From: Dicyema japonicum
Lineage: Eukaryota > Animalia > Dicyemida
NCBI GenBank assembly: GCA_011109175.1
Contig: RDEW01000014.1
Coordinates: 558,001 to 622,000 of the forward strand
Length of the DNA stretch: 64,000 bases
Direction: 5' to 3'
How positions within the stretch are numbered: position 1 is the stretch's first letter; every line of letters starts with the position of its first letter. The notes beneath the pieces are model-generated. The model did not search any database. It saw nothing but the letters and a program-made list of their open reading frames with translations, and was not told the origin of the DNA. Position numbers and translations under genes: made by a program. Below, piece after piece: positions 1-49,429 of this stretch.

Positions 1-671
1 TATTCGCATAAAATATATTTGTCGAACATTGACGCAAACCTGAAATTATAATTGGGAAATTTCTTGAGTGGTCGACGAGGACGAGTACACTATGACAATT
101 GATGTTCCGTATCGAGAATATTAGCAATTGGCGTTCCACATGGCCCCCCATTATCTCCCCTATTGTTAAACGTTAGGATGGATGACTTGCCACTCTCTCA
201 GGGGGACGCTGACTTATTATTAACGTATGCTGATGATATAGTTATTGCCTCGAGGGATGTGAGTATTGTGGATTCAACGAGAAGAATACAGGACAATATG
301 AATAAATTAAGTTCATGGCTTTGGAAAAATCAATTGACTGATAGCCCGGAGAAGTCGGTGTCGACCATATTCACGACAAACAGAAAACTATGGAAAGTAT
401 CAATTGACGTCACACTGGATGGAAAGATTATCCCGCAAAACAAATACCAGAAAATCCTGGGAGTCACCTTGGACACCTTCTTAATCATTACAAAACATGT
501 CGAAAATATGTTATTGACTTGTACGAGGAAAATCAACTTCTTGAAGGCGTTCTTGTGAAACCTAAGAACATGAAAGATCTGAGTGACTGGTAGTCATATG
601 CAAACAGTTTATCGAGGCGACAATAGGATACGCATGTAATATCTGGGGATCTTACTTTTCTACAATGAATT
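1..671 (+). mobile_element. APE-type non-LTR retroelement (family A), RT fragment, copy 1
   Basis: GVPHGPPLSP, LTYADDIVI and KILGVTLD RT motifs (ORF 163-558); near-identical to 3091-3878 and 9686-10472. Confidence 0.85.
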
Positions 672-808
672 TGAAAATATAAGTTTAATTATGTAAAAAT
701 TAGAAAAAAGTTGATTTGTTAAAAAATATAGATTATATATATATTTTTTTAATAAAAACATTACGATAAAAGATAGTTCTACAACATAACAAAAATTAAC
801 ATGTTCAA

Positions 809-987
809 CGTTATTTAACTAACAATAAAAAAGTTAATATATTTAGTAATCAACAACCTTCCTCGCCACACTGTTCGCCAGACTCCTCAGGCAGATTCGA
901 TTCTGGTTCCTGAAACAACTCCGAGAGCGCTTTGTCCAATTGAACCCTCTGCCCATATGTCATCTCAGGGCTCTGCCTCCTATACTC
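809..987 (-). mobile_element. 5'-truncated R4-like retroelement 3' end with 11-bp TSD
   Basis: Matches 31315-31490; flanked by AACATGTTCAA at 798-808 and 988-998. Confidence 0.85.
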
Positions 988-1552
988 AACATGTTCAATA
1001 TTTATAAAATTAATTTAATGTAAATCAAAAAAAATATATATATTATTTTAGTTATTTATTCGAATCGCTATAAATCACTTTCGATTAGCATGATAACCTA
1101 ACTGATGACTTATACTGATTCTCATTCTTCTATTCAGCGTTTCATTACGTTTTACATTCAATTGGATGTCATTAAATAACCAACATTTTAAAAATACCAA
1201 ACAATTAACATTAACGTCATCACAGTCTTCCATTTAATAATATATTAAAATCTACTTGTTAAAAATAATATATTAAGATTAAATCTATTTTAAATATCTT
1301 CTCATATATTAATGTCTGTTGATTTAATTTCAAACTTTATTTATGAATACATATAAAGTTGTAGTAATCGATATAATATAAAGTTTTTAGTGCTAATTAG
1401 TGGCATCTGTCCGACATAACGATACTCATTAGTTTAATTTTAAATTAGTGTAAATTAAAAAGTGTCACAAAATAATTAATTATTATTTAGTAGTAATAAC
1501 TCTCGAATATTACAGACTATATTTTAATTTTTTTTGAATGAACTAGAAATAT

Positions 1553-1980
1553 TTAAAAATAAAACTTTTTTTGATGCGAACGATCATTGAAAATCTGATT
1601 ATACATTTGTTTGTAAGATTCTGTATCGGAATCAGAATCTTGTATGAGTTGGTTATTTTCCCAAGTTTCATTAAAATAAAGCCATTTCTCGTTTTCGCAT
1701 CTTTCAAATTTGTCTCTTTTAATTCTTTTAGTGTTATAGAATTCTTTATACCTTTTAGATTTTGGATATAAACTAAATATATTTAAATATTAAACTGATT
1801 ATATTTATCTATAAAAGAAGAAGATCTTTTCATCGGTTGATATTCTTCCTCATCAGATTCAAACAAATTCACTAAATTTCAGATTTTACTATGAACCATT
1901 CCATAAATCCATTATCGTAGTAATCTGATTTTTATTATATAAATACTCAATGTTATTTTGAGAAAATAAAATTACAATCA
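1553..1980 (-). CDS. Orphan gene A of cassette 1 (spliced; paralog of gene B; 5' end uncertain)
   Basis: GT-AG introns 1872-1896 (25 nt) and 1773-1795 (23 nt) join an open frame MDLWNVNLFESDEEE...SKRYKE...FNETWENNQLIQDSDSDTESYKQMYNQIFND...KFYF*. Confidence 0.7.
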
Positions 1981-2451
1981 AACATCAGAAAAACATAACT
2001 TTATGTGACTACTTTCTTATTTATTTCATTTTTGTGAATGTATTAATTAGAAATTTTGATTTAAGATAAATTTCAATATAAAAAGTAATATTATTACTAA
2101 AACTTTATGTTTACAATGTTAAATAAAAACTTAACAGCATATTTGATATAATTTATATTTTAATATTTGAATATTCATTTTTGACAATAATATTAAATAA
2201 TTCAACATGCTATTTTAAAGTAATTTTTAAATTATCTTTATTGTTTCGCGATATTTTAAATTTTGACGTAAAATATTGTGATTACTCATAAATTTTTATT
2301 TCGTATATAGAAGAAATTGGCATTATTAATAAATTTTAAATTATAAGAGATTTAATAATAAATTGTAAATTCTAAGAGATTAATAAAGATTTAATAGAAA
2401 AAAGAATTTTTGTTATTATATAGACTATCAAATATAGTGATAAAATTATTA

Positions 2452-2910
2452 GCTAATAATTTTATTTTATCGCAATAATACCGAAAATTATATAATGGAT
2501 TTAGATCGCCGATTGTTAGTAGAAATGGACTTGTGGAATGGTTTCTAGTATAATATTAATTATAGTTAATTTGTTTGTAACTGACGATGAGCAAAATGAC
2601 AGCAATAAACGAAATAAACCGACATGCGACATGGAGAGCCAGATGAAGTGAAAAATTTAAATATATTTGTAGTTTCGATGCAACTTCCAAAAGAGCACGA
2701 CAAGAATCAAACACTCAGTTCTACGAAACAAGAAAAGATGATAGTGAAAGTCAAAAATCGAAACCGATGACGTTCAAGGAAATATGGAACTATGACCGAC
2801 TCAAACAAGAAGATTCAGAATGGGGGAGAGAATCTGGCAAACAATTGTTTGACCATATCTACAATGATATGATGGCTTGGTCGCAAAAATATGATGAAGA
2901 AAAGTTGTAG
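2452..2910 (+). CDS. Orphan gene B of cassette 1 (spliced; one 1-nt indel near 2840; 5' end uncertain)
   Basis: GT-AG introns 2541-2565 and 2648-2672 (25 nt each) give MDLWNVNLFVTDDEQ...SKRARQE...FKEIWNYDRLKQEDSEW...ES.K.MFDHIYND...DEEKL*; intron positions match gene A. Confidence 0.72.
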
Positions 2911-3090
2911 TTTTTAATATTTCCAGCTCTAACAAAAAGCGAAATAAAAAAATAAATAATCATCTTTAATCATCGATAATTATCACTAATGATAAATAAT
3001 TTCCAAATTCGCTACTATAATTAATTAATTTACACTAATTTAAATCAAAAGAAATGCGGCATCGTTCTGTCGGGCAGATGACACTTAATG

Positions 3091-3878
3091 GGACTACAAT
3101 GACAATATCAGTGTTCACTTCAACTCTACCTTATTCAAGGACGGAAAAATACGATTGTATGCTCAATTGATATCCAGAAGGCTTTTAACTCGGTTTCGAG
3201 TAAGATTATCACGCACAAAATATATTCGTCGAACATTGACGCAAACCTGAAATTATAATTGGGAAATTTCTTGAGTGGTCGACGAGGACGAGTACACTAT
3301 GACAATTGATGTTCCGTATCGAGAATATTAGCAATTGGCGTTCCACATGGCCCCCCATTATCTCCCCTATTGTTAAACGTTAGGATGGATGACTTGCCAC
3401 TCTCTCAGGGGGACGCTGACTTATTATTAACGTATGCTGATGATATAGTTATTGCCTCGAGGGATGTGAGTATTGTGGATTCAACGAGAAGAATACAGGA
3501 CAATATGAATAAATTAAGTTCATGGCTTTGGAAAAATCAATTGACTGATAGCCCGGAGAAGTCGGTGTCGACCATATTCACGACAAACAGAAAACTCTGG
3601 AAAGTATCAATTGACGTCACACTGGATGGAAAGATTATCCCGCAAAACAAATACCAGAAAATCCTGGGAGTCACCTTGGACACCTTCTTAATCATTACAA
3701 AACATGTCGAAAATATGTTATTGACTTGTACGAGGAAAATCAACTTCTTGAAGGCGTTCTTGTGAAACCTAAGAACATGAAAGATCTGAGTGACTGGTAG
3801 TCATATGCAAACAGTTTATCGAGGCGACAATAGGATACGCATGTAATATCTGGGGATCTTACTTTTCTACAATGAATT
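3091..3878 (+). mobile_element. APE-type non-LTR RT fragment, copy 2
   Basis: SIDIQKAFNS, YADD and KILGVTLD motifs; ORF 3370-3765 encodes the same protein as 163-558. Confidence 0.85.
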
Positions 3879-3942
3879 TGAAAATATAAGTTTAATTATG
3901 TAAAAATTAGAAAAAAGTTGATTTGTTAAAAAATATAGATTA

Positions 3943-6900
3943 GTATCTCCGCTTCCTTCCTATTTTCTGGATCATCCAACTCTTTATCAGTGTCGCGTCG
4001 CCTCTTTCCCAAATTGCATCCAGTAAGAGGATTCTTCATCATTTCCCAATTATTGTTAATCGCCATCGTTATTTGTTCAAACCCGTGTTTATATTCTACA
4101 AGCATGCTCTCTAAAGTCTTCTTCAGCGCAATCGTTTGGATGTACGCTCGGGTGATAATCGTAATTCCAATGATGTCCATGTATGATTTGAAATACCTGG
4201 AGACAATTCCATCCCAGGTAAGAACAATTGGGAGTATCTTTATTTTGGCTTTGTAAATGATCTCTAGTTAACTCGCAAGAATGTCGTATTTATGTAGTTT
4301 TTCAACTTCGACAGCCTTGAGATTGTCCATTGCTGTTACTCCATTTTCAATTAGCCATATTTGGTTCATTTTCTTATCGTACAAGAAAATGTCAGGCTTG
4401 TTATATTGGACTTTGGACTCCGTTGGAATGGTCGTATCAACTCGGATCTCGGCATGCTGATTTGTGATGATGCTTTGAATAGAATGTGACTTCAATTTTT
4501 TGGATTTTTTAAATCCAAATTTTCTAGATAAATGCATGTGAATGCATTTAACTATTTCATTGTGTCGTCTTGTATAGTCTGAGTTTAGCATTGTTACACC
4601 TCGTAGCCAAATGATCGACAGTTTTTTCGAGGAATTACAATGTGGACATTTTAGACCAAGATCCCGGAAAAAGATATTCCTATCTTGCAAAAGAAAGAAC
4701 ATCGCTTCAGACTTGGGAGAAATATTTCCATTTGTGATCCATGTAGACGATGATTTATGTCAAATGTATCATCTCAAGTGATTCAAATAATATTGAATGT
4801 AGGCTTTTCTTTTTGATGATAGACAGGAGAGAGTTAATCTGTGAACTCTTTAGATTCTCCACAATGTCTATGGTTGGGCCCATTTGGTATTTTACCCGCA
4901 GGAATTCTGTGATTGTGGCCATATGTGTTTTTCTTAGCTGTTCGGCCCACAGAATTCCAGCTTTTCTCAGAGAAATCTTTTTCCGCCTTTCAAGGCTTGT
5001 TTTAAACTCAAGTAGCATTTTTTCTGACTTAAAAGTAACTGATATCAGCCCTCTTCCCAGCGTACTCCTTGGTAAGTTTAATCTTTCCTTGGAAGCCGGT
5101 TTCATGTGAATACCCAAACGCATAAGTAATTTTCTGACTAATCTATCAAATTCCTCGTATTCACCGGGTTCCATCTCGAGAAGACCAATATAATAATAAA
5201 AAAGGGATAGAGCATGTTCATTTATGGCTTTAAACAAATTGACCGAATTCAATTTCGTTTTTGACAGTTTTTCAATACGATCTTGCACCTCCTCTTTGAT
5301 ATTTTTAAGTACAACTTCTTTAACTACTTTGCTGGAATTGTCTTCTAACACCCCCAAATAGCGATAACTATCCACTCCATCCATTAGTTTAGCATCATTC
5401 GATAGTAAATAACTATTTGTTGCGGACTTTTCAAAATTCTTTTCTAAGCCGGACAATTTAAAGTAAGCATTCACATCTTTCATCATGCATGCCAGTGTCC
5501 CTTCCTCTTTTGCCAAAAGTTTCAAATCATCGATGAATAAGAAATGATTCGCAGAAAAAGTAAAAGAATTAGATTCAGCAGTATTGATAGACATGCTCGG
5601 ATATTTTGCAGACAACATTCTGCTTAGTGGATCCAAAACAAATACAAATAATTGAGGTGATAGAGAGTCACCTTGGAGTATTCCACGTTCAATATTAATC
5701 GTTCCCAATATCTTTTTCCCCAATCTTAATGACACACGCCAGTTTGGAATTATTGATATTACAAACTTGGTTATCCATTCTGGTAGTCCCGGGTTTTCCA
5801 GGATTTTAACAAGATACTCGTGACTCACTGAATCAAACGCTTTTCTAACATCAATCCATGCACAGAATAGTTTGTTTTCATGGGCTTTGTTAACACATCT
5901 GTTTAAAAGTGCCAATTCCTTTGCTCCTTGACAGTGTCGTTTTGTCCCAAGCTGATACTCAGTAATTAAATCATAAGTTTCAGCATATTGTTCAATTTTT
6001 TCGTTTACACACTTCGTAACCAGCTTGTATAAGCACGGCATACATGTAATCGGTCTAAGATCCTTAGGGTCAACAGAGTTCTTCTTCTTTGGGATTAGGT
6101 ATGTAATCCCCGTATAAAACCATCTTTTCGGTTGACTTTTCCCACTAATGATATCTCTGATCTCTTTAAATAAATATTGATGAAGAGAATCCAACTTCTT
6201 GATAAAGAAGTTATATACGCAATCAACTCCGGGGGCCTTCCAATTTGGGAGGTACTCAATTAAATTTGATATAAAATTATCGTTTATATCAGATTCTTGC
6301 TGTTCAACTCCCGTTATTCTCTTGTTCATTCCAAAACTCAAAACATTTTTATCTCTTTTTTCCCAAACCTCTGTCCAAAATTTAAAGCATTCGGATGTGT
6401 CAAAGCCATCAATGCACTCAATGTCAGAATCTGACTTTAGTTTTCTATAGAATGACCTTCTGTTCAACTCAAAATTTCGATTATCAGTTCCATATTGTCG
6501 CTTCGAGTCTGCAATCGACAACTTTTTGTTTAAAATTCTAATTTGGTCATTTATTGCGGTTTATATCCTTTCAAATTCACCCCTTTTGCATTTTTTTAAT
6601 TGTAGGAACACTGAATGTCGACTGCTTTTTTCTTTTCCTCGCCTGTAATAGTAGACATAAAGAAATTTGATATTACTAGATTATTTTCAGCTAAAATTTC
6701 AATCTTCTATTGTATTCTTTGCCTCCAGTTCGATTTGAAAGGTTCCTTCATTGTGATTTGTTGATATACACACTGAGCAGAGTATATCAAACATTAAATG
6801 TCTTCAATACTAGAAGGTATGTTATTCGATGTATATTCGATAAAAGATTTATTTAGCATTTCAATTAAATTGTCATTTACAAACTGGAAAGGAATCTTCC

Positions 6901-7343
6901 TTGTTTGACGCCTTTCATCTATTTTCTTTGAACTATTTGCATCAATCTGACTCAATAATTCTTCAAAGGTTTTATTGTATAATGCCAACTCAGGTGCCTT
7001 ATCCATTTTAATTCCAATTTTAGGTATTGTACTATATTCTGATGACAGGAGACAAGTCTCTTCAACTCATAAACGGATTTCTTTTTTCCAAATTTAGAAT
7101 TAAAATAATTGGCTATGAATGGCCACCCTCCTCTAGGTACTCGTTTGAGGCGGTCTTTGACACAAGTTAAAAGAGATGAGATCCATTCTCCGGGATTAGA
7201 AGAGTCAATAGAGTCGCAGATTGCATTCAGAGAACACAAAGTTGAGATGGTTTGTTGAGGACCGTTACTGTAATTGACTTGGGCATTAAAATGACCATGA
7301 ACAGGCAAATCCACACTTTCTCGAACACCATTTATTAATAAAA
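3943..7343 (-). mobile_element. Near-complete R4/Dong-like non-LTR retrotransposon (RT, CCHC finger, restriction-like endonuclease), 8-bp TSD
   Basis: 588-aa RT ORF (WKAPGVD, LRPITC, WIDVRKAFDSV, GILQGDSLSP, LFIDD), CPHC..DHLATRC, RRHNEIV, NKPDI, KYDILA. ATAGATTA at 3935-3942 and 7344-7351; the empty site is present in unit 1. Confidence 0.92.
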
Positions 7344-7422
7344 ATAGATTATATATATTTTTTTTATAAAAACATTACGATAAAAGATAGTTCTACAATA
7401 TATCAAAAATTAACATGTTCAA

Positions 7423-7600
7423 CTTTATTTAACAAACAATAAAAAGTTAATATATTTAGTAATCAACAACCTTTTTCGCCCCACTGTTCGCCAGCCTCCT
7501 CAGGCAGGTTCGATTCTGGTTCCTGAAACAACTCCGAGAGCGCTTTGTCCAATTGAACCCTCTGCCCATATGTCATCTCAGGGCTCTGCCTCCTGTACTC
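7423..7600 (-). mobile_element. 5'-truncated R4-like 3' end, duplicated copy
   Basis: Copy of 809-987 with the same TSD at 7412-7422 and 7601-7611. Confidence 0.85.
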
Positions 7601-8153
7601 AACATGTTCAATATTTATAAAATTAATTTAATGTAAATTAAAAAAATATATATATATTATTTTAGTTATTTATTCGAATCGCTATAAATCACTTTCGATT
7701 AGCATGATAACCTAACTGATGACTTATACTGATTCTCATTCTTCTATTCAGCGTTTCATTACGTTTTACATTCAATTGGATGTCATTAAATAACCAACAT
7801 TTTAAAATACCAAACAATTAACATTAACGTCATCACAGTCTTCCATTTAATAATATATTAAAATCTACTTATTAAAAATAATGTATTAAGATTAAATCTA
7901 TTTTAAATATCTTCTCATATATTAATGTCTGTTGATTTAATTTCAAACTTTATTTATGAATACATATAAAGTTGTAATAATAGATATAATATAAAGTTTT
8001 TAGTGCTAATTAGTGGCATCTGTCCAACATAACGATACTCATTAGTTTAATTTTAAATTAGTGTAAATTAAAAAGTGTCACAAAATAATTAATTATTATT
8101 TAGTAGTAATAACTATCGAATATTACAGACTATATTTTAATTTTTTGAATTAA

Positions 8154-8580
8154 CTAGAAATATTTAAAAATAAAACTTTTTTGATGCGAACGATCATTGA
8201 AAATCTGATTATACATTTGTTTGTAAGATTCTGTATCGGAATCAGAATTTGTTGATTGGTTATTTTCCCAAGTTTCATTAAAATAAAGCCATTTCTCGTT
8301 TCGCATCTTTCAAATTTCTCTTTTAATTCTTTTAGTGTTATAGAATTCTTTATACCTTTTAGATTTTGGATATAAACTAAATATATTTAAATATTAAACT
8401 GATTATATTTATCTATAAAAGAAGATCTTTTCATCGGTTGATATTCTTCCTCATTAGATTCAAACAAATTCACTAAATTTCAGATTTTACTATGAACCAT
8501 TCCATAAATCCATTATGCGTAGTAATCTGATTTTTATTATATAAATACTCAATGTTATTTTGAGAAAATATAATTACAAT
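8154..8580 (-). CDS. Orphan gene A, copy 2
   Basis: Collinear with 1553-1980 with the same introns; several small indels, mostly compensating in frame. Confidence 0.55.
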
Positions 8581-9049
8581 CAAACATCAGAAAAACTAAC
8601 TTATGTGACTACTTTCTTATTTATTTCATTTTGTGAATGTATTAATTAGAAATTTTGATTTAAGATAAATTTCAATATAAAAAGTAATATTATTACTAAA
8701 TTTTATGTTTACAATGTTAAATAAAAACTTAACAGCATATTTGATATAATTGGATATTTTAATATTTGAATATTCATTTTTGACAATAATATTAAATAAT
8801 TCAACATGCTATTTTAAAGTAATTTTTAAATTATCTTTATTGTTTCGCGATATTTTAAATTTTGACGTAAAATATTGTGATTACTCATAAATTTTTATTT
8901 CGTATATAGAAGAAATTGCATTATAATAAATTTTAAATTATAAGAGATTTAAATAATAATTGTAAATTCTAAGAGATTAATAAAGATTTAATAGAAAAAA
9001 AGAATTTTTGTTATTATATAGACTATCAAATATAGTGATAAAATTATTA

Positions 9050-9506
9050 GCTAATAATTTTATTAATCGCAATAATATCGAAAATTATATAATGGATTTA
9101 GATCGCCGATTGTTAGTAGAAATGGACTTGTGGAATGGTTTCTAGTATAATATTAATTAAGTTAATTTGTTTGTAGCTGACGATGAGCAAGATGACAGCA
9201 ATAAACGAAATAAACCGACAAGCGACATGGACAGCCAGATGAAGTGACATATTTAAATATATTTGTAGATTAGATGCAACTTCCAAAAGAGCACGACAGG
9301 AATCTAACACTAAGTTTTCCGAAACAAGAAAAGATGATAGTGATAGTCAAAAATCGAAACCAATGACCTTCAAGGAAATATGGAACTATGACAGACTCAA
9401 ACAAGAAGATTCAGAATGGGAGAGAGAATCTGGCAAAAAAATGTTTGACCATATCTACAATAATATTATGGCTTGGTCGCAAAAATGGGATGAAGAAAAG
9501 TTGTAG
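9050..9506 (+). CDS. Orphan gene B, copy 2 (open from ATG 9092 to TAG 9504-9506 after splicing)
   Basis: Introns 9138-9161 (24 nt) and a 25-nt GTGACA...GTAG; ends ESGKKMFDHIYNNIMAWSQKWDEEKL*. Confidence 0.75.
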
Positions 9507-9685
9507 TTTTTAATATTTTCAGCTCTTCCAAAAAGCGAAATAAAAAAAATAAATAATCATCTTTAACCATCGATAATTATCACTAATGATAATAATTTCC
9601 AAATTTGTTACTATAATTAATTAATTTACACTAATTTAAATCAAAAGAAATGCGGCATCGTTATTAGGGCAGATGACACTTAATG

Positions 9686-10620
9686 GGACTACAATGACAA
9701 TATCAGTGTTCACTTCAACTCTACCTTATTCAAGGACGGAAAAATACGACTGTATGCTCAATTGATATCCAGAAGGCTTTTAACTCGGTTCGAGTAAGAT
9801 TATCACGCACAAAATATATTCGTCGAACATTGACGCAAACCTGAAATATAATTGGGAAATTTCTTGAGTGGTCGACGAGGACGAGTACACTATGACAATT
9901 GATGTTCCGTATCGAGAATATTAGCAATTGGCGTTCCACATGGCCCCCCATTATCTCCCCTATTGTTAAACGTTAGGATGGATGACTTGCCACTCTCTCA
10001 GGGGGACGCTGACTTATTATTAACGTATGCTGATGATATAGTTATTGCCTCGAGGGATGTGAGTATTGTGGATTCAACGAGAAGAATACAGGACAATATG
10101 AATAAATTAAGTTCATGGCTTTGGAAAAATCAATTGACTGATAGCCCGGAGAAGTCGGTGTCGACCATATTCACGACAAACAGAAGACTATGGAAAGTAT
10201 CAATTGACGTCACACTGGATGGAAGATTATCCCGCAAAACAAATACAGAAAATCCTGGGAGTCACCTTGGACACCTTCTTAATCATTACAAAACATGTCG
10301 AAAATATGTTATTGACTTGTACGAGGAAAATCAACTTCTTGAAGGCGTTCTTGTGAAACCTAAGAAACATGAAAAGATCTGAGTGACTGGTAGTCATATG
10401 CAAACAGTTTATCGAGGCGACAATAGGATACGCATGTTAATATCAGGGGATCTTACCTTTCTACAATGAATTGGACAGATCTGCAAAATTCAAGTGAAGG
10501 AAGCAAACCTTCTAAGGAAATCTTCATCGTGTGGAAATCCTCCAAGAAACCTTGAAAAATATGATAGAGGCAATTGAACACTACCTGTGAAGGACTCTTT
10601 ATGTGGACCCGCCCATATCG
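9686..10620 (+). mobile_element. APE-type non-LTR RT fragment, copy 3 (continues past the repeat breakpoint)
   Basis: Same RT sequence; after 10472 it continues with LINE-like sequence instead of the repeat spacer. Confidence 0.8.
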
Positions 10621-10739
10621 GAAAATGTCTTAACCAAATAACTACAAAAAAAACCGTCTTAACCAATAACTAGTAATTCACTCGATTATTTGTCCGTCTT
10701 AATATTTTATATGACAATGATCTCCTCAAAGACCATCGC

Positions 10740-10825
10740 CCCCTGATCAGAAAAATCGCTCCTTGACAAAAAAATCGCTCCCTTGAAAAAAAATCGGGCG
10801 ATTCGCCCCTCGCTGAGAACCATTG
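10740..10825 (-). mobile_element. hAT (Charlie/Buster-type) terminus
   Basis: Reverse complement begins CAATGGTTCTCAGCG; 8-bp flank GTTTAAAC with central TA; subterminal AAAAATCGCTCC repeats. No partner end found. Confidence 0.55.
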
Positions 10826-10960
10826 GTTTAAACAATAATAAAAATTTTTTCTAAATTGAGAGTAATGTGGAATGATATTTTTCAATTAGCTGCATACTTA
10901 TCGAGAAATATTTTTTTTAATTATTAATTAAAAAAACTTAATAAATCTAGATTCCAGATA

Positions 10961-12130
10961 CAGTAAATTCTCTCGAATCCGCCAATTTCGGGGATCGGCA
11001 AAAATCTGACGGATTCGAGAGACTTTTGATTTTTTATCCATTAATAATGTAAATCAAAAAAATTATTTATAAGAAAAAAATCAGTAAGTTTTGATTAGCA
11101 TCTTTTTATAGTACGGATCATTGAAGATCCAAGCTTTCAATAGACTCAAGATTTTCGACATTAAAGAATTCTTCTTGATTATAGAATTCTTTTAATTTAT
11201 TTAAAGGCTAGGAAAGCCTCGCTAATAGCTATACCTTTCAGACTTTCTTCAAGGGGTTCTTCACTATCAATTTCTTGTTCTGATTCTCCAAATCATTCAA
11301 ATCAAGTTCTTCATTTTCATTGTAGTCAATTTCGATATTAAGTCTCTCTTCCAAAGGATCATATATGTTCATTTTGTCTAGATTATATTCGTAATTTTTA
11401 ATAACAAGGTTTTCATAATTTATATTTTCAATGTTTTGAATCCATTTTGCGTGCATTTTAATATTAAAGAACTATCTATCTAGTTCCAAGCATTGACTGA
11501 AACTCTGTTTCAATACTTTATAACCTGATTTAAGGTTACTACAAACACTCTTGGAGATATCATTTTGTAAAATAAACCAGTTTAGTCCGCATTATAAACA
11601 TTTTGAGCTCCTTGGAGATTCATTTTATTTTGATTAATTTAATAAAATCTGATACCACATTAGGGTCAAAATTTAAAGTTGCAGATTCTCCATGCATATT
11701 TTGTAACTTCAAACCTTTCCTCTTTTTAAATTTAACAAGCTCCCTTTGGTTCCTTTGAAATCAGTGATCCCTCGTTTCGATGCAAATGTTTTGACTTTCT
11801 CAGTAATAATTTAATCGTTCAAATGGCTCTTTTAACATCCATTGAATTAACCAAAGAAATCGTATCATAATCGATTTCACTAAACTTTAAATATTCTTTG
11901 CGAAAAATTTCAGATCGTAAGTTATTCAACATATTTTCAGATCCTCATTTACTTCTCAGATCATCAATAGATCTAAGAGAAATAGGTGCATTATATTTTT
12001 TGGAAAAAATTTCTGAAATTTTCATCGAAAGTAATTCAATATTCGATTCAATAAACTTTAAAATGGCAATTTTTTGTTTGTTTTTTAATCGTGTATAGCT
12101 ACGTTTCATGAAAACAACAATAAACAATGA
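10961..12130 (-). mobile_element. pogo/Tigger DNA transposon remnant
   Basis: CENP-B-type HTH (EKVKTFASKRGITDFKGTKG..KFKKRKGLKLQNMHGESA), NVYNAD*TGLFYK, terminal KLTDFF, and a TA + CAGTAAATTCTCTCGAATCC terminus at 10959-10980. Confidence 0.85.
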
Positions 12131-13084
12131 CAACGTGATAATAAGTTATTTGAAAAATTATTTAAAATTAAGAGAACTGAAATACAATTTTTGAATATCC
12201 TTGATGCGTCTTCTTGGGTGAAGTAAGTTTTCCCTTATCATTTATAAACAAATATTGACATAATCTGGATGATAAATTACTCCGTAGTTAATTTTAATAG
12301 ATTACTTCCAGATATCTTAAAATTAAAATTCCATTTCAAACATAATTATAGTTATTTTTTACTTCAGTAAAATTTTTACAAAATTGCACTGCTGGTTATT
12401 TGAGCAAATCTCAGACGCCATCTTTAGACGGGATAGCCACGTAGTCAGGGCAGCCGCTATACGACAATTTACTCTCTTTTTTTCTTAAATAAAAAAATAA
12501 TATTCAACAATTTCAAAACAATTTCCCCTTCTGACAGGAATTATTTTGGGTAGATAGCCAATTTTAATAAAATTTTCTGTTTTTTATGCAATTTTCTACA
12601 CTTTTTCATAGAGGAAGTAAAACGATATCCTATACCCTTAAACAAATTTTGTGAAATTTACTGTTTAACTTATGCAAGGAAAACCATATTCGACTAAGCA
12701 TTAGTGATCTCAAACTTATCAGTTAGCACCTTAAATAAATGTTAAGGTTTAAATAATTAGGTTTTTTAATAAAAATAATAATCTGTCCCCGACATAATTA
12801 TTTTATTGCACAGGATAATGGACTCTGATTTAAACACGCAAAACATCGAGGATTCTTAGACTCACCTTTGATTAGGAACTCTCTTTTATCTGACATGTTG
12901 AGAACAAAGTTACTTCTGTATGAAGAAAATGAAAATTTTAAAAGTGCTCTCGAAACACTTAAAGACAAAACTGGGAGTTTATGAACGATTTTCCGACCTA
13001 CGATGACGTATGCAAGTGCTTCGTGGGCAATGCAAAATTCACGGTCCTCGTAAAAGTACAACCTATTATTTAAAATCTTCTAAT

Positions 13085-13440
13085 TATTATTATTAAAACC
13101 AAAAATCACCTACAAATTAAAAAACTACATAGCCGTCTGGTGATTCCGGACGCCTCGACTAGCCATCTCATTCTTGCTCGGTGTTTCTCGGGTTCCAACG
13201 CATTTCCGGATTGGGCAGGGGTTTCTAACTTTTTTGAGGGGTAGTAAGGCTCCGGTTTTCTTCACTAATTCCTCAAATAGTGTAGGGTTTAGAGGTGTCT
13301 GGGAAAACCTTTGCATAGCCTTATTGGCCATTTTTTGGAATGTATTGATTTTTTCCATATTCGCGTTTAATAGTTTGGTATCCCATGCAATTAAATTACA
13401 ACGAAAATTCTTAAAGGCTGCAGTCTACCGAGCTGCCCCC
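13085..13440 (-). mobile_element. APE-type LINE 3' end (family A)
   Basis: Post-RT tail IAWDTKL...KINTFQK, ending in the family GGAATCACC motif with a downstream complementary arm. Confidence 0.65.
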
Positions 13441-14078
13441 TGTTTCATATAATATCGAAATATCTACAAACATGTAAAAAGTTTGAGCCGATCCATGTCC
13501 TATGAGAACAGTAGTACATGATTCTCGACCCTGCCGGACTCTTACCCTCCTTTATCTTTCTGGGTTCACATAGTTAGTTGAGAATTTTTATTTCTTTATC
13601 TTTGCTCCAGTTATCCTGGGGGTAATAATAAGTAATTTGCCACTCACGATAGAAATAGATGTCTACTGATGGATCATTAGGTTTCAGAACGTCAAAGCAT
13701 TTGAGTGTAAATAGACATCCCAGTTCTTGAAAAAATAGTGACTTCCTGATTATATCTCCAGTTACCTTGACAACAATTTCGCAGAAATTGAACCTGTCCA
13801 AGAGACCTCCTTATTTTTTCTTTTGAGAATTCTCTGTCTTTTTTGGAACAGAAAATGAATTTACCACGTTGCTAATATTTATGAAAGTTAATACATGTGG
13901 CGTCCCACAGAAGTTGCTTCCTTTCCTCGAACTAAAAAATCGTATTCCGCCTCCTCTGTCAAGCATGGCTACAGCATGGAGTAGTTTTTTTATTTACGGA
14001 TAAAAAGTAACAATTCAAAAAGTAACTAAACTCATTCATATATATAAAAAACAAAATTCACAACCAATAATAAAGTGA

Positions 14079-15357
14079 TCAATATCTCTTCTCATAAAGT
14101 ACAAGAAAACGTGAATAACCACACAATTTCTGTTCACACTTTTCCATCAAAAACAATGAAGTGTTCATAAGCAAATCTGCAATTTCACTCCAACAGACAC
14201 ATGGTATGAAGAATACGAGTTACCCCCTCGTCTTAACATCGTTTCAGAGAACTTTAATAAGCGTTGATAAATCGCATAAGGATCCACAGAACCCTGTCCA
14301 TTCTTCTTCAAGCTCTCCCGCACTCCATAAGGTGCTAAAGACAATATTACAAACTCAAATACGGTCTGTGATGATAGCATCATATTTAAAGTGATTCCTC
14401 TTTCAGCGGTAATCTGTAAAAGTCCGCAGCCAAAACGTCAATTAGTCTGTCAGAGAGATCATACTGGAAGAAATTGGCTGCATTGGACTCACGTCGTTGT
14501 CTCCACGTCTTTTTCGCCCGAGTAGACCGTCCTCGCCCTTTGAGAAGAGTCAGATCCAATTCTGATCCAAGGACAAAGGCACCGTCGTGGGCAGCAGCCA
14601 ACAAAATACTGCCTGTCCCCACAAAAGGATCTAACACAAGTCTACCAGACGAACAACACGCAAAATTGCTCATCAAAAAAGCCATAAGCGGATCCATAGA
14701 TGTTCTTCCTAAAATTCATTCTCAATATAACCTATGAAAACTCGATTCTTTAAAGAATACGCCTTATTTAAGACGTATTTACGACCTCTTTTAAGTAAAA
14801 CTCCTAGGAAAATTCGACTAGGGACTTTCTCCTTAGCTTTGTAATATTCAAGCAATCCAAATTCGACGTCAGGGTTCTTTAGGCAAACGTCACAGTCAAA
14901 AATTGAATAATTCATAAAATCTAATTTCTAATATTAACATAAATTAGTTTTTTTATAAAAAATTTACTTTAAACTTTTCATGTTGTTCCTCAATCGAAAT
15001 TTTTATATTAACAGTTTCCAAGTGATAAGACCAAGTTAGGTTCTGAGAATTAAGCAGAGGGTCGTTACAAGTGCTATAATCTCCGAGAAACTCATCCCAC
15101 GTAAACCCGTCGGCTATAAATCTGTATGCTGCTCTTGTATTGATTGACACAAGTTTACTTTATTAAAATAGACCGCTCAGTGAAAATTTCGAAATTTTTC
15201 TCAGTCATTGTGCATTTTAGAAATGGTCCGTGGAGTTCAATACTTGAAATGTCGAATTCGGGAAGAAGAGATCTCAATTCCTGAAATAACTCCTTCTTAT
15301 TACAGGAATCCAAAAGTTTTCTAATTGAAGTGAATAGTGAAGAATATAAATTGGCAT
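14079..15357 (-). CDS. TRMT11: tRNA (guanine-10-N2)-methyltransferase
   Basis: Five introns (15281-15303, 15134-15158, 14928-14967, 14709-14731, 14335-14362) join YSLKNRVFIGRTSMDP, VLDPFVGTGS, DAIITDPPYGVRE and CEQKL; two 1-nt indels. Confidence 0.92.
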
Positions 15358-15559
15358 CACTAGATCGAACGTGGAATTATTAAAATTATTTAAACAAATG
15401 TTTTTATTTATTTATAAAAATCTTGTAAAAAATATTTTAAATTCTTAAGTCGATAGAATGTTTTAGTGGTAGCATATTTTTATTAACAGGATGTTCACTT
15501 AGCTTCGTGATGGACTCCAATATATAATGCAGCCACATGACCATCATCGAATGATTAAC

Positions 15560-16652
15560 TGTCACAGTCCAGATCTGCGAGACGCCTGAGCCGCCATGCT
15601 CAAGATACGAAAAAAATATTTTTAATAAAATTTCATTGTAAGAAATTATCAATATTAAAAAATAAAACTTATATATAATTTTTTTGAAAATATCAATTAT
15701 AAAATATGGTTCTAGTGGAATTAACACGCGCAGCAATTTAAAAAATTAAGATTTCAGTGAATCGGAAACGATACGCTCAAATTTTCAGTTTCAAGAAATC
15801 CGAAGCGTGCATTACTAAAAATGGTCAAGAGTTGCGATTCTTTTTTATTGTGGAAGCTAAATTAAAACTAAAATATATTGAAGTTGTATATTTGTTAATT
15901 TAAATTAGGCTCAACATAATCTAAATCACTTTGGACGTGATAAATTATATAGTTTATTGTCACTTAGCATTTATGATGCAAGACGTAGTGAAGTGGCTAC
16001 TGTGGTATCTAAATGTGTTTATTTCAGGTAAATTATTTATTCTAACAATTTTAGTCTGAACGAATGCTTGCGGCTAAACAAGTAATTACGGAAAATATTA
16101 TCAAATCAGGCGAAGAATGAAAAACCGTAGAAATGGAAATACGACGAAATTGAAGATGGCGATGAAATTTTAATACGCCACAACGGGGACGCAAACGTAG
16201 CTAATAGAAAATACCCCTTATACGGCCAAATCTCAACGAAAAATATACTGTAACAAATACCGAAGGAGAAATGATCAAATTCTAGATGATGAAGATAAAG
16301 AATTTAACACCATACATATAAGCCAGGTCAAAAAGTTATGATAATTTTAATTTTTTGATTTGTTTTCTTTGAAAATATTGTATCAATTAAAATAACATTT
16401 TAATAAATTTTATTGCTAAAATAGTTTGGTCAACTATTTTCGTGAATTTTTAAATAAAATGAAAAAACGTTACATTCAATTAATGATTTTGATGGAATGT
16501 TGGTTTACAGGAAATCACGATCTTTAAAATAATAGGGAAAAAATTAATAATTTCAGACATTTAATCAAAAGATCAAGAAAAAAACTTCAGAAATGTAATT
16601 TTTATTAACAATTATTAGTATTTTTAAAATCTCGCAGCTCTGGACTGTGACA
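15560..16652 (+). mobile_element. Non-autonomous Ginger-like (integrase-type) DNA transposon, TGT...ACA ends, 5-bp TSD
   Basis: 23-bp TIRs with 22/23 identity (15560-15582, 16630-16652); TTAAC on both sides; spliced remnant with integrase zinc-finger pattern HNLNHFGRDKL...RSEVATVVSKC; no DDE core. Confidence 0.7.
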
Positions 16653-16749
16653 TTAACTTCCATATAACAGAATGGAGATACATGTGCTCATTGATGACCA
16701 TTGGTCAAAAAATACCCCAAACTGAAAAATATAATCACATTACAAGATC

Positions 16750-17035
16750 CTAAAACTGTCCGAACTTTTTGGAGACATGCTGCGCTTTGCTTCTACAACT
16801 CACGAGAATTATGCGGTGGAAATGTATTTCATGGATGAATATTGAACAGATTATCTTCAAAACTCTCTCGGTTGTTCTCAACGGTGACCTAACAAAAATC
16901 AATAATAAACTATTTACACAAGATCTCGACAACCTACGAAAAAAAACACTGAACAGGGTAGTCTGGAAGAAGCTAGTTGACAGGATCTGTCAGGTGGCAC
17001 AAGAGGAATTAACCTTGCTATTATTTTTCAAACAG
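16750..17035 (+). mobile_element. RTE-like LINE 3' fragment
   Basis: DLDNLRKKTLNRVVWKKLV, same tail type as 27333-27671. Confidence 0.6.
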
Positions 17036-17199
17036 TGATTTTAATAATTGTTGGTTAAATAAAATGGATAAAAGTCCTTGTCTTTTTTCTCGTCATCAAG
17101 GACAAGGTGACGGGTTCAGGAGACATTTGAAACCCGATGTTCTGAAACGTTGTACGTAGCATCCAAATTTTTGGGTCAGAAATATAATCTTTTTATGAT

Positions 17200-17426
17200 C
17201 CTTCTAAGCATCCTAATTTGTCTTATGACTCCACGTTGGGACTTGTTCCTCAATTTTTTTCTAGTGCCACGTGGTGCTATGTGGCTAATTGGTTAAAGTT
17301 TTCTGCTTGTTTTGTCTGTTTCTTCTCCCTTACTTGCTAAAGTGGGGTCATTTTATCCACTTGTCTCAAGAGGCGCCTTGTGTCAGTCTGACACGAAAAA
17401 GGATGATTTGCTTTCCCCCACTCCAG
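17200..17426 (+). mobile_element. LINE family B 3'-region fragment
   Basis: Homologous to 18840-19060, 23300-23470 and 60950-61140. Confidence 0.7.
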
Positions 17427-31300: not shown

Positions 31301-31314
31301 TATCGATTGAGTAT

Positions 31315-32070
31315 TATTTAACAAACAATAAAAAAAAGTTAATATATTTAATCAACAACCTTCCTCGCCTGCCTGTTCGCCAGCCTCCTCAGGCAGTTCG
31401 ATTCTGGTTGCTGAAACAACTCCGAGAGCGCCTTGTCTAATTGAACCCTCTGGCCCATATGGCATCTCAGGGCTCTGCCTCCTATACTCCAGTGTCAGGC
31501 TCTCTAGGGTCCGCTTTAACACAGTGGACTGTAGATAGGCCTGGAGCTTTCCTATCTACCCCCAGCTGCTTCAGATAACCCTTGTGGTACTTTGTTGCAA
31601 TTCCTTCCTACGTCATTACTATAGGAATAACGAGGACCTTGCAACCAAGCATCTGCCCCATCTCGTTTGCAAGCAAGTCATACTTTCTTTTTTTCTTCAC
31701 CTCCACAGTTTGCAAACAGTCTTGAGACGTAATGCCAACCTCTATGATAAGGACTTGGCCAGACTCCTTATCGTGTACCACAATGTCCGGTTTATTGTGC
31801 TTGACTAGCACCGAGGTACGGATAACACTGTCTACCCTAATTTGGACCCTGGTGTTTTCTACTACAGATTGCACCTTATGAGTCCGCAACTTTCTGGTGT
31901 AGCGAATACCATACTTATTGCATAGTAGAAGATGAAGACTCTTTACTACCTCGTTATGCCTCTACATATAGTCGTGGCAGAGCATGGACCCACATCGAGT
32001 GGCTAAATGATCATCCGACATGCTCCTTGACTTACAATGAAGACATGTATTTATTGATCGACCCCGATTG
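31315..32070 (-). mobile_element. R4-like retroelement (second family), CCHC finger, endonuclease and 3' end
   Basis: CLHC...DHLATRC, RHNEVV, NKPDIVV, IIEVGITS, KYDLLANE. Confidence 0.88.
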
Positions 32071-47019: not shown

Positions 47020-49011
<1,992 letters not shown>

Positions 49012-49429
49012 TACTAATGAGTATCACGATATCGTTAACTATTTTTCGTTTTATATAAGAATTGATGGAGAAAATGCTAGAACTTTCGAGCTCATTTCGT
49101 AATGCGTGTTGGCTAGCCATTTAATATATAATAAATTAATCTTATTTTAAATTTAATTATATCTAAATTTAATCTATATTTAATAATTTACGTTTTTCTT
49201 TATTTTTACTATATTTTTCTTAAGAAAATATCATGGTCATGGGTGTTAAATAAATAAATAAGGAAATATCATATCTTGGACACTGAGGCCGTCCAAATCT
49301 TGGACAAATATGAGGAAAATTGAGGAAATGCAAAAGAGGGCTTACAGAGTAACGGACTGTTGGATTTGTGAAGATCACCGAACCAGACCTACGCCTCTGG
49401 AGACCCTGTTACAATGATAAATAGCTTTG

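Follow-up and report, generated by a model that had tools for sequence, protein, structure and literature searches.

Near the left end of a 64,000-nt stretch of DNA from the octopus parasite Dicyema japonicum, two small genes, called here A (minus strand) and B (plus strand), point away from each other within a diverged palindrome of about 1.7 kb (~1385-3099). We consider it likely that they form an orphan pair of paralogous protein-coding genes, and that this pair arose when a small gene was duplicated long ago in inverted orientation together with its promoter and 3' flank. The stretch, referred to below as the window, corresponds to positions 558,001-622,000 of contig RDEW01000014.1 (assembly GCA_011109175.1), and all coordinates given here are those of the window. 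A preliminary description, made from the sequence alone, had pictured the locus as a diverged palindrome with a functional gene kept on either arm, and at the same time as a putative mobile cassette bounded by terminal inverted repeats (TIRs). The former picture is supported by the alignments of the arms, by the open frames and by the RNA coverage; the latter is discussed further below.

As originally proposed, the genes are transcribed outward from an A+T-rich centre, which proved to be a spacer of 612 bp. Each begins with a 16-nt first exon, followed by a 25-nt intron and a second exon of 76 (A) or 82 (B) nt, and intron 2 measures 23 nt in A and 25 nt in B. These two introns had been recognised correctly in both genes (all are of the GT-AG type, in the same phases); however, the actual number of introns per gene is three. 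The third intron of B (2904-2926) was first revealed by the read data. Its removal skips the TAG codon at which B had been thought to end, so that the stop codon becomes TAA 2967-2969 and the protein gains the tail NSNKKRNKKINNHL. The corresponding segment of A (1565-1543) has GT-AG ends, is identical to intron 3 of B at 19 of 23 positions and lies in the same phase; its splicing, which we infer from this similarity, would yield a protein of 105 aa, while with the intron retained A would encode 103 aa and stop at TAA 1555-1553. All three intron positions and phases agree between the genes, and the lengths of the exons differ by 0, 6 and 24 nt. Introns 2 and 3 of B apart, the remaining four introns are putative and were assigned by homology. 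The tiny introns are better kept between A and B (72-83% identity) than the adjoining exons (56-61%), which fits the idea that almost every base of so short an intron is a splicing signal. The ORF (open reading frame) lister returns only fragments of both genes, in agreement with the earlier remark that they escape ORF callers. Introns shorter than 30 nt have been reported in D. japonicum (PMC13644364, PMC6736024), and myxozoans, such as Henneguya salminicola with its G+C content of 29.1%, also have introns of this size (PMC13644364).

Sequencing runs of any kind were admitted in the search for reads from this locus. Four runs of one 2019 sample contained three quarters of the words searched for, and X5, a small run from 2017 and the one RNA-like run, contained 7% of them; contigs of X5 and of three DNA runs were placed on positions 500-4500. 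Judged by its depth, X5 behaves as RNA: it is absent (depth zero) from the spacer (bins 1840-1973 through 2376-2509) and from the left flank (1036-1437), and rises to 3,059 over B and to 707 over part of A. Its contigs cover 2596-3241 in B and ~1528-1707 in A, where they extend into exon 3. One of them lacks 25 letters over 2648-2676, which is exactly intron 2 of B if the first bases of exon 3 are allowed to be those of a second B copy (B2, see below), and another lacks exactly 2904-2926, i.e. intron 3. Both gaps are found at 100% of the X5 depth, and the three DNA runs never lack these letters; introns 2 and 3 of B are accordingly GT-AG introns of less than 30 nt that are missing from RNA. 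At most variant sites (position 2875 is one of the exceptions) the letters of X5 match the second copy, indicating that the expressed copy is B2-like. The RNA thus confirms the splicing of introns 2 and 3 of B, and none of the three junctions of A is shown by X5 contigs.

We take A and B to be protein-coding because four observations on their frames agree. First, just 2 (A) and 3 (B) of 50,000 composition-matched shuffles leave the spliced frame open. Second, the first nine codons (MDLWNVNLF) differ between A and B by three silent changes (GAT/GAC, TTA/TTG, GTG/GTT) and by no replacement change, which bears out and extends the silent differences noticed earlier in MDLWN. Third, the local similarity of the two proteins is highly significant against shuffles (z-score 13.5), at an overall identity of ~33%. 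Fourth, when exon 3 is compared alone, the annotated frame yields a higher similarity (z 7.6) than the other two matched frames (z 4.9). The common motifs listed in the preliminary description (MDLWNVNLF, SKR, F.E.W...L.Q.DS and ES.K.....I.N) are all real. This does not extend to an upstream hydrophobic stretch (LIVILFSQNN / LIILFYRNN), which had also been counted as shared by the two genes: it results from translating a conserved block of DNA that adjoins a TATATAA-like box and that has no start codon and zero X5 depth. Mirrored blocks of 33 nt are present on the two sides of the spacer, and the TATATAA-like box in front of each gene (Table 1) is a candidate promoter element. An in-frame ATG is found 30 nt before the start of B (2495-2524, reading MDLDRRLLVE and then MDLWN); it overlaps the TATATAA-like box and has no counterpart in gene A.

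Neither protein could be assigned to a family, as had been anticipated. The library queries were exon 3 of each protein rather than the whole spliced proteins. Pfam returned no match for A or B up to an E-value of 1, and a word-based search with exon 3 of B revealed no relative. A profile built from exon 3 of A, B and B2 found no match among 1.84 billion representative proteins, nor in the PDB up to an E-value of 10, and the best scores of both proteins in the Atlas (0.50-0.61) were below the useful level. Within the reach of these libraries A and B represent a new protein family, and a taxon-restricted gene pair is in itself an ordinary kind of thing. The layout of the proteins comprises the strictly conserved N-terminal MDLWNVNLF, an acidic patch, the basic SKR and, on the C-terminal side, a predicted helical hairpin and then a short tail of basic residues. 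In the AlphaFold model of exon 3 of B (mean predicted local distance difference test score, pLDDT, of 61) the first half is disordered and is followed by two helices, which cover the part with the F.E.W...L.Q.DS and ES.K.....I.N motifs. The secreted pair that had been envisaged is unlikely, and classically secreted or membrane-bound proteins were rejected as candidates, on account of a strongly hydrophilic composition (grand average of hydropathy -1.63 to -1.75, ~-1.65) without any hydrophobic window; neither protein has a signal peptide or a membrane segment. A and B are most likely a co-expressed pair of small intracellular proteins, perhaps nuclear because of the basic stretches SKR and KKRNKK. 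We speculate that the N-terminal peptide could serve as a docking motif and that the helical hairpins may pair.

The ~60-bp imperfect inverted repeats on which the idea of a TIR-bounded cassette was based do exist: 1401-1460 and the reverse complement of 3025-3083 are identical at 48 of 61 positions (79%, z 8; shuffles: 50 +/- 4%), and the match consists mostly of an exact 20-mer (1439-1458) and a block of 23 bases (1401-1423), neither of which is found in the window outside the two cassette copies. These ends are only part of the inverted similarity, though. BLASTN and a global alignment with the left half reversed revealed that the arms are homologous in full, from the centre (~2225) outward, with identities between A and B of 88% in exon 1, 72% in intron 1, 56% in exon 2, 80% in intron 2, 61% in exon 3, 83% in intron 3 and 79% in the repeats; over the 45 nt outside the repeats the identity is still 60% (z 2.3), and beyond 1355 and 3128 there is none. 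The mirror homology of both arms and the same gene structure on each are what is expected of a paralogue pair made by inverted duplication. The 'TIRs' correspond to the outer part of the palindrome arms, which has diverged least, and are not established transposon ends. An X5 contig of 452 letters (2769-3241) runs across the right repeat and ends inside a LINE (long interspersed nuclear element) fragment, and X5 does not cover the left repeat (1401-1460), hence the repeats are not common to both mature mRNAs. A role of the repeats at the RNA level was rejected, as Rfam gave no match in 1-10600 and the repeats fold no more stably than shuffles (z 0.4-1.1).

Table 1. Coordinates of the gene pair, the palindrome and the surrounding repeated DNA (positions in the window)
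Feature	Positions	Strand	Description
Gene A	1524-1912	-	105 aa (with putative intron 3 spliced); ATG 1912; exons 1912-1897, 1871-1796, 1772-1566, 1542-1524
Introns of gene A	1896-1872, 1795-1773, 1565-1543	-	25, 23 and 23 nt, the third putative; GT-AG
Gene B	2525-2969	+	123 aa; ATG 2525; exons 2525-2540, 2566-2647, 2673-2903, 2927-2969
Introns of gene B	2541-2565, 2648-2672, 2904-2926	+	25, 25 and 23 nt; GT-AG
AT-rich spacer	1913-2524		612 bp between the start codons; mirrored blocks 1942-1974 / 2457-2489
TATATAA-like box, gene A	1941-1935	-	29 nt upstream of ATG
TATATAA-like box, gene B	2489-2495	+	36 nt upstream of ATG
Left inverted repeat	1401-1460		outer, best-kept block of left arm, downstream of gene A
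Right inverted repeat	3025-3083		outer block of right arm, within the read-through or 3'-untranslated part of B transcripts
Weak continuation of left arm	1356-1400		29/48 vs reverse complement of 3084-3128, z 2.3
Weak continuation of right arm	3084-3128		mirror of 1356-1400; a DNA contig departs from the reference at 3128
Tandemly duplicated block	714-3881		= 7330-10475, collinear, 96.7%; LINE end, spacer X, palindrome, LINE fragment
Spacer X	736-1384		~650 bp, left of the palindrome
LINE fragment	3139-3942	+	C-terminal part of reverse transcriptase, YADD motif; 3139-3881 within the duplicated block
Retroelement	3943-7329	-	588-aa reverse-transcriptase ORF 4755-6521 (RVT_1, E-value 3.9e-28); splits the second unit
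Second palindrome copy	7998-9694		A2, ATG 8513, minus strand, with frameshifts; B2, ATG 9122, plus strand, intact, 120 aa

The palindrome is part of a larger repeated structure. The sequence 3212-3942 equals 5-735 at 99.6% identity, which together with the duplicated block implies that a 3,207-bp unit, composed of the LINE fragment, spacer X and the palindrome, is repeated in tandem; the read depths suggest that 3-4 copies of this unit exist. Circular DNA has been described in Dicyema, with circles of 600-800 bp, and so has no bearing on the 3.2-kb unit. The retroelement that splits the second unit, between its LINE fragment and spacer X, contains, downstream of its reverse-transcriptase ORF, an ORF of 144 aa with cysteine/histidine motifs and a faint restriction-endonuclease-like match (E-value 0.057). 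In the second copy of the palindrome, intron 1 of B2 is 24 nt long and ends with AAG, the 1-nt deletion lying inside the intron and leaving the frame unharmed. The two B copies (B1, i.e. the gene B described above, and B2) show no indel over their first 117 codons (351 nt of coding sequence), vs nine gap events in the spacer; a single 1-nt insertion in the terminal A-run changes only the last few residues. In the right repeat of this copy, three changes lie close together within the block that is otherwise best conserved. The divergence between the units amounts to 1.6% over 1,464 non-coding positions vs 6.8% in the coding sequence of B (P-value 1e-6), and is concentrated in a tract (~2580-3071 vs 9176-9666) that differs by ~7%, introns and untranslated region included. 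Because introns and untranslated region are as diverged as the coding part, with a synonymous divergence (dS) of 0.11 and a ratio of nonsynonymous to synonymous divergence (dN/dS) of 0.57, this tract was probably acquired by conversion from a more distant, third copy of B; for the same reasons positive selection on B was rejected as the cause of the fourfold excess of divergence.

Taken together, we propose that a single small gene, its promoter and its 3' flank would have been duplicated in inverted orientation long ago, and that A and B would each be transcribed outward from a core promoter of its own in the shared 612-bp spacer, each transcript losing three spliceosomal introns of 23-25 nt. 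The repeats may have been kept by some function of the 3' flank or by conversion between the arms. The 3.2-kb unit (palindrome, 650-bp spacer and LINE fragment) would then have been duplicated in tandem, and in the second unit A was apparently broken, while the B region received the diverged tract, probably from a further copy of B.

Several observations weigh against this reconstruction. Since no homologue was found in the libraries searched, no conservation is seen beyond the locus itself. The dN/dS of B1 and B2 is indistinguishable from neutral, and A2 has suffered deletions of 3, 3, 2, 1 and 1 nt, with frameshifts near 1711-1712, 1692 and 1566 in the coordinates of the first copy, and contains a TGA after codon 51, i.e. 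it is either decaying or mis-assembled. A run of 20 identical bases and repeats of 79% identity, in arms of ~60%, are beyond simple decay. The copy search was confined to the 64-kb window. The RNA shows two of the six junctions, both of them in B and on a B2-like variant, and no X5 contig covers the 5' parts of B (2525-2595) and A (1708-1912). Moreover, in the X5 contig extending to 2596 the first 23 letters do not match the genome, so that the expressed B copy may have a 5' structure other than the one modelled here. In B2 the acceptor of intron 1 is now AAG, and a second AAG arises at 2593-2595 (equivalent region of B2: 9138-9192); it is conceivable, purely from these letters, that B2-type copies use an in-frame intron of 55 nt (2541-2595), which might explain the 23 unlike letters. 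Spliced-leader trans-splicing was also considered as their source, and at the level of titles and abstracts we found no literature on it for dicyemids.

Among the other explanations, the one proposed at the outset, i.e. a non-autonomous DNA transposon with ~60-bp TIRs (TG...CA) that carries the genes as cargo and depends on a transposase encoded elsewhere, fares best, yet we regard it as unlikely. It would account for repeats that are better kept than the arms (79% vs 56-61% in the exons) and that are found close to where the inverted similarity ends, and the surrounding DNA is rich in transposons. However, the only second copy in the window is a segmental tandem copy, which shares 670 bp of the left and >750 bp of the right flank, so that the duplication extends beyond the repeats; neither dispersed copies with unrelated flanks nor empty sites were found there. 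The left flank 1036-1437 and the cassette have similar depths in three DNA runs (in X3: 5,700-6,700 vs 4,200-9,600), while 811-987 and 3180-3715 are 10-100 times deeper. A DNA contig (1101-1501) crosses the supposed left end at 1401, and among the loose ends listed (a further 699 lie beyond the list) none is at 1401 or 3083. One rearrangement does place the right arm beside a different flank: contigs from X1 and X4 (two runs of one sample), as deep as the main contigs, follow the right arm to 3128 and continue with 64 letters from 1352 downward on the opposite strand. This joint implies at least one further copy or a rearranged unit, with its break outside the repeat. With ends placed at 1400 and 3084, TTA is found on both sides; a match of 3 nt is weak in DNA with 70% A+T, though, and these bases are equally compatible with an inverted repeat that simply continues. 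The inverted similarity that persists for 45 nt outside the repeats and the changes clustered in the most conserved block of the right repeat of copy 2 likewise speak against a transposon. The cassette contains no transposase, which had been noted from the start, and the window no autonomous partner. The interpretation of the repeats as ends of an element thus found no confirmation, and mobility of the cassette is unsupported rather than excluded.

It is somewhat less probable that the pair belongs not to the host but to a larger composite repeated element made up of spacer X, the palindrome and the LINE piece, whose accessory genes A and B would be. That the whole 3.2-kb unit is repeated, at the copy number suggested by the depths, agrees with such an element, as do the transcripts of B that continue into the LINE fragment on the same strand, the low G+C content of the genes (26-35%) and the distribution of CACGTG, which is absent from 1-17267 and occurs 16 times in the remaining 47 kb (a 1.7-kb cassette is too short to be informative in this respect). 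Yet neither protein matches transposon or viral families (Pfam, profile search, Atlas), the LINE pieces are internal fragments of far commoner elements (in the DNA runs their depth is high, and loose ends fall at 3138 and 673), and spacer X is not transcribed in X5. We assign an equally small probability to the pair being a conflict-type module, tandemly amplified, patchily converted, fast-changing and strongly transcribed, with two small proteins that would act on each other (for instance a poison-antidote or driver-suppressor heterodimer), or a cargo element with conserved ends that a transposase encoded elsewhere would recognise. The least probable explanation sees in the arms palindromic repeats that are transcribed yet do not code for protein (or are dead), the frames being a by-product of choosing introns that skip stops. 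It could invoke the missing homologues, the low-confidence model, the B1-B2 dN/dS not different from 1, the broken A2 and some freedom in the choice of introns. Against it, RNA confirms two of the introns chosen (one of them discovered from RNA alone), both arms keep open frames at a DNA identity of ~60%, their exon lengths differ by multiples of three, the N-terminal codon changes are all silent, the annotated frame gives the best protein similarity, and B has no frame-breaking indels against nine gap events in the spacer.

An origin of A and B by inverted duplication has parallels in known systems. Gene-bearing palindromes, for example those of mammalian sex chromosomes, contain head-to-head paralogous pairs made by inverted duplication. 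They share with the locus described here the mirror arms with the same gene and exon-intron structure, outward transcription from a short spacer, traces of patchy conversion or homogenisation, and amplification within repeat-rich DNA; unlike their near-identical arms, those found here are short (~0.85 kb) and old (~60-65% identity), with ~33% protein identity, introns of 23-25 nt and a dicyemid host. The histone H2A-H2B and H3-H4 units are divergently transcribed gene pairs in tandem arrays. Small genes placed back to back on a short spacer and tandem repetition are common to both, and in the present array pieces of retroelements lie between the units; A and B differ from histone genes in that they are paralogues of each other, have introns, belong to no known family and have no predicted 3' stem-loop. 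Foldback or long-TIR non-autonomous transposons resemble the locus in their inverted repeats at the limits, palindromic layout and lack of an internal transposase. In contrast to them, no dispersed copies, clear target-site duplication or clearly defined termini were seen in the window, and the interior consists of two apparently expressed and spliced genes rather than of spacer DNA.

The genome of D. japonicum has been reported to contain 5,012 gene models and 313 lineage-specific gene clusters (PMC6736024). The pair resembles these clusters in having no relatives outside the lineage, in its setting in a reduced, LINE-rich genome and in its very short introns. Tiny first exons and the repeat-rich surroundings make such a pair easy to overlook in gene models, and the locus illustrates how a gene escapes ORF-based calling, with a first exon of 16 nt, three introns of 23-25 nt and a stop codon that is spliced out. 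It adds a transcribed, spliced and relative-less gene family to a very reduced animal genome (~5,000 gene models); should this family prove to evolve fast and to be amplified throughout the genome, it would become a candidate for biology specific to the parasite.

The window as a whole is A+T-rich (G+C content of 26-45% in 2-kb steps) and contains reverse-transcriptase fragments, as seen in the ORF list and by Pfam; the 54 kb from 10,000 to 64,000 hold three ORFs of at least 150 aa. For the complete genome, 36.7% G+C, 48.9% repeats and numerous LINE copies have been reported (PMC6736024). The G+C content of ~36%, the LINEs and the 23-25-nt introns seen here agree better with these figures than with the myxozoans mentioned above. 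The segment 811-987, found also at 7425-7600 and 31314-31489, is a piece of an abundant repeat, with ~100 times the depth of its neighbours in the DNA runs and a minus-strand open frame that ends with TGA; its loose ends at 811 and 987 indicate that the full repeat element continues past this piece. An Hsp70 gene (47624-49120, minus strand) is split into two ORFs by an apparent single extra T near 48545, within AVITVPA-YFND. This 1-nt frame break makes the gene either a pseudogene or the victim of an assembly indel, and the possibility of assembly indels is relevant to the frameshifts of A2.

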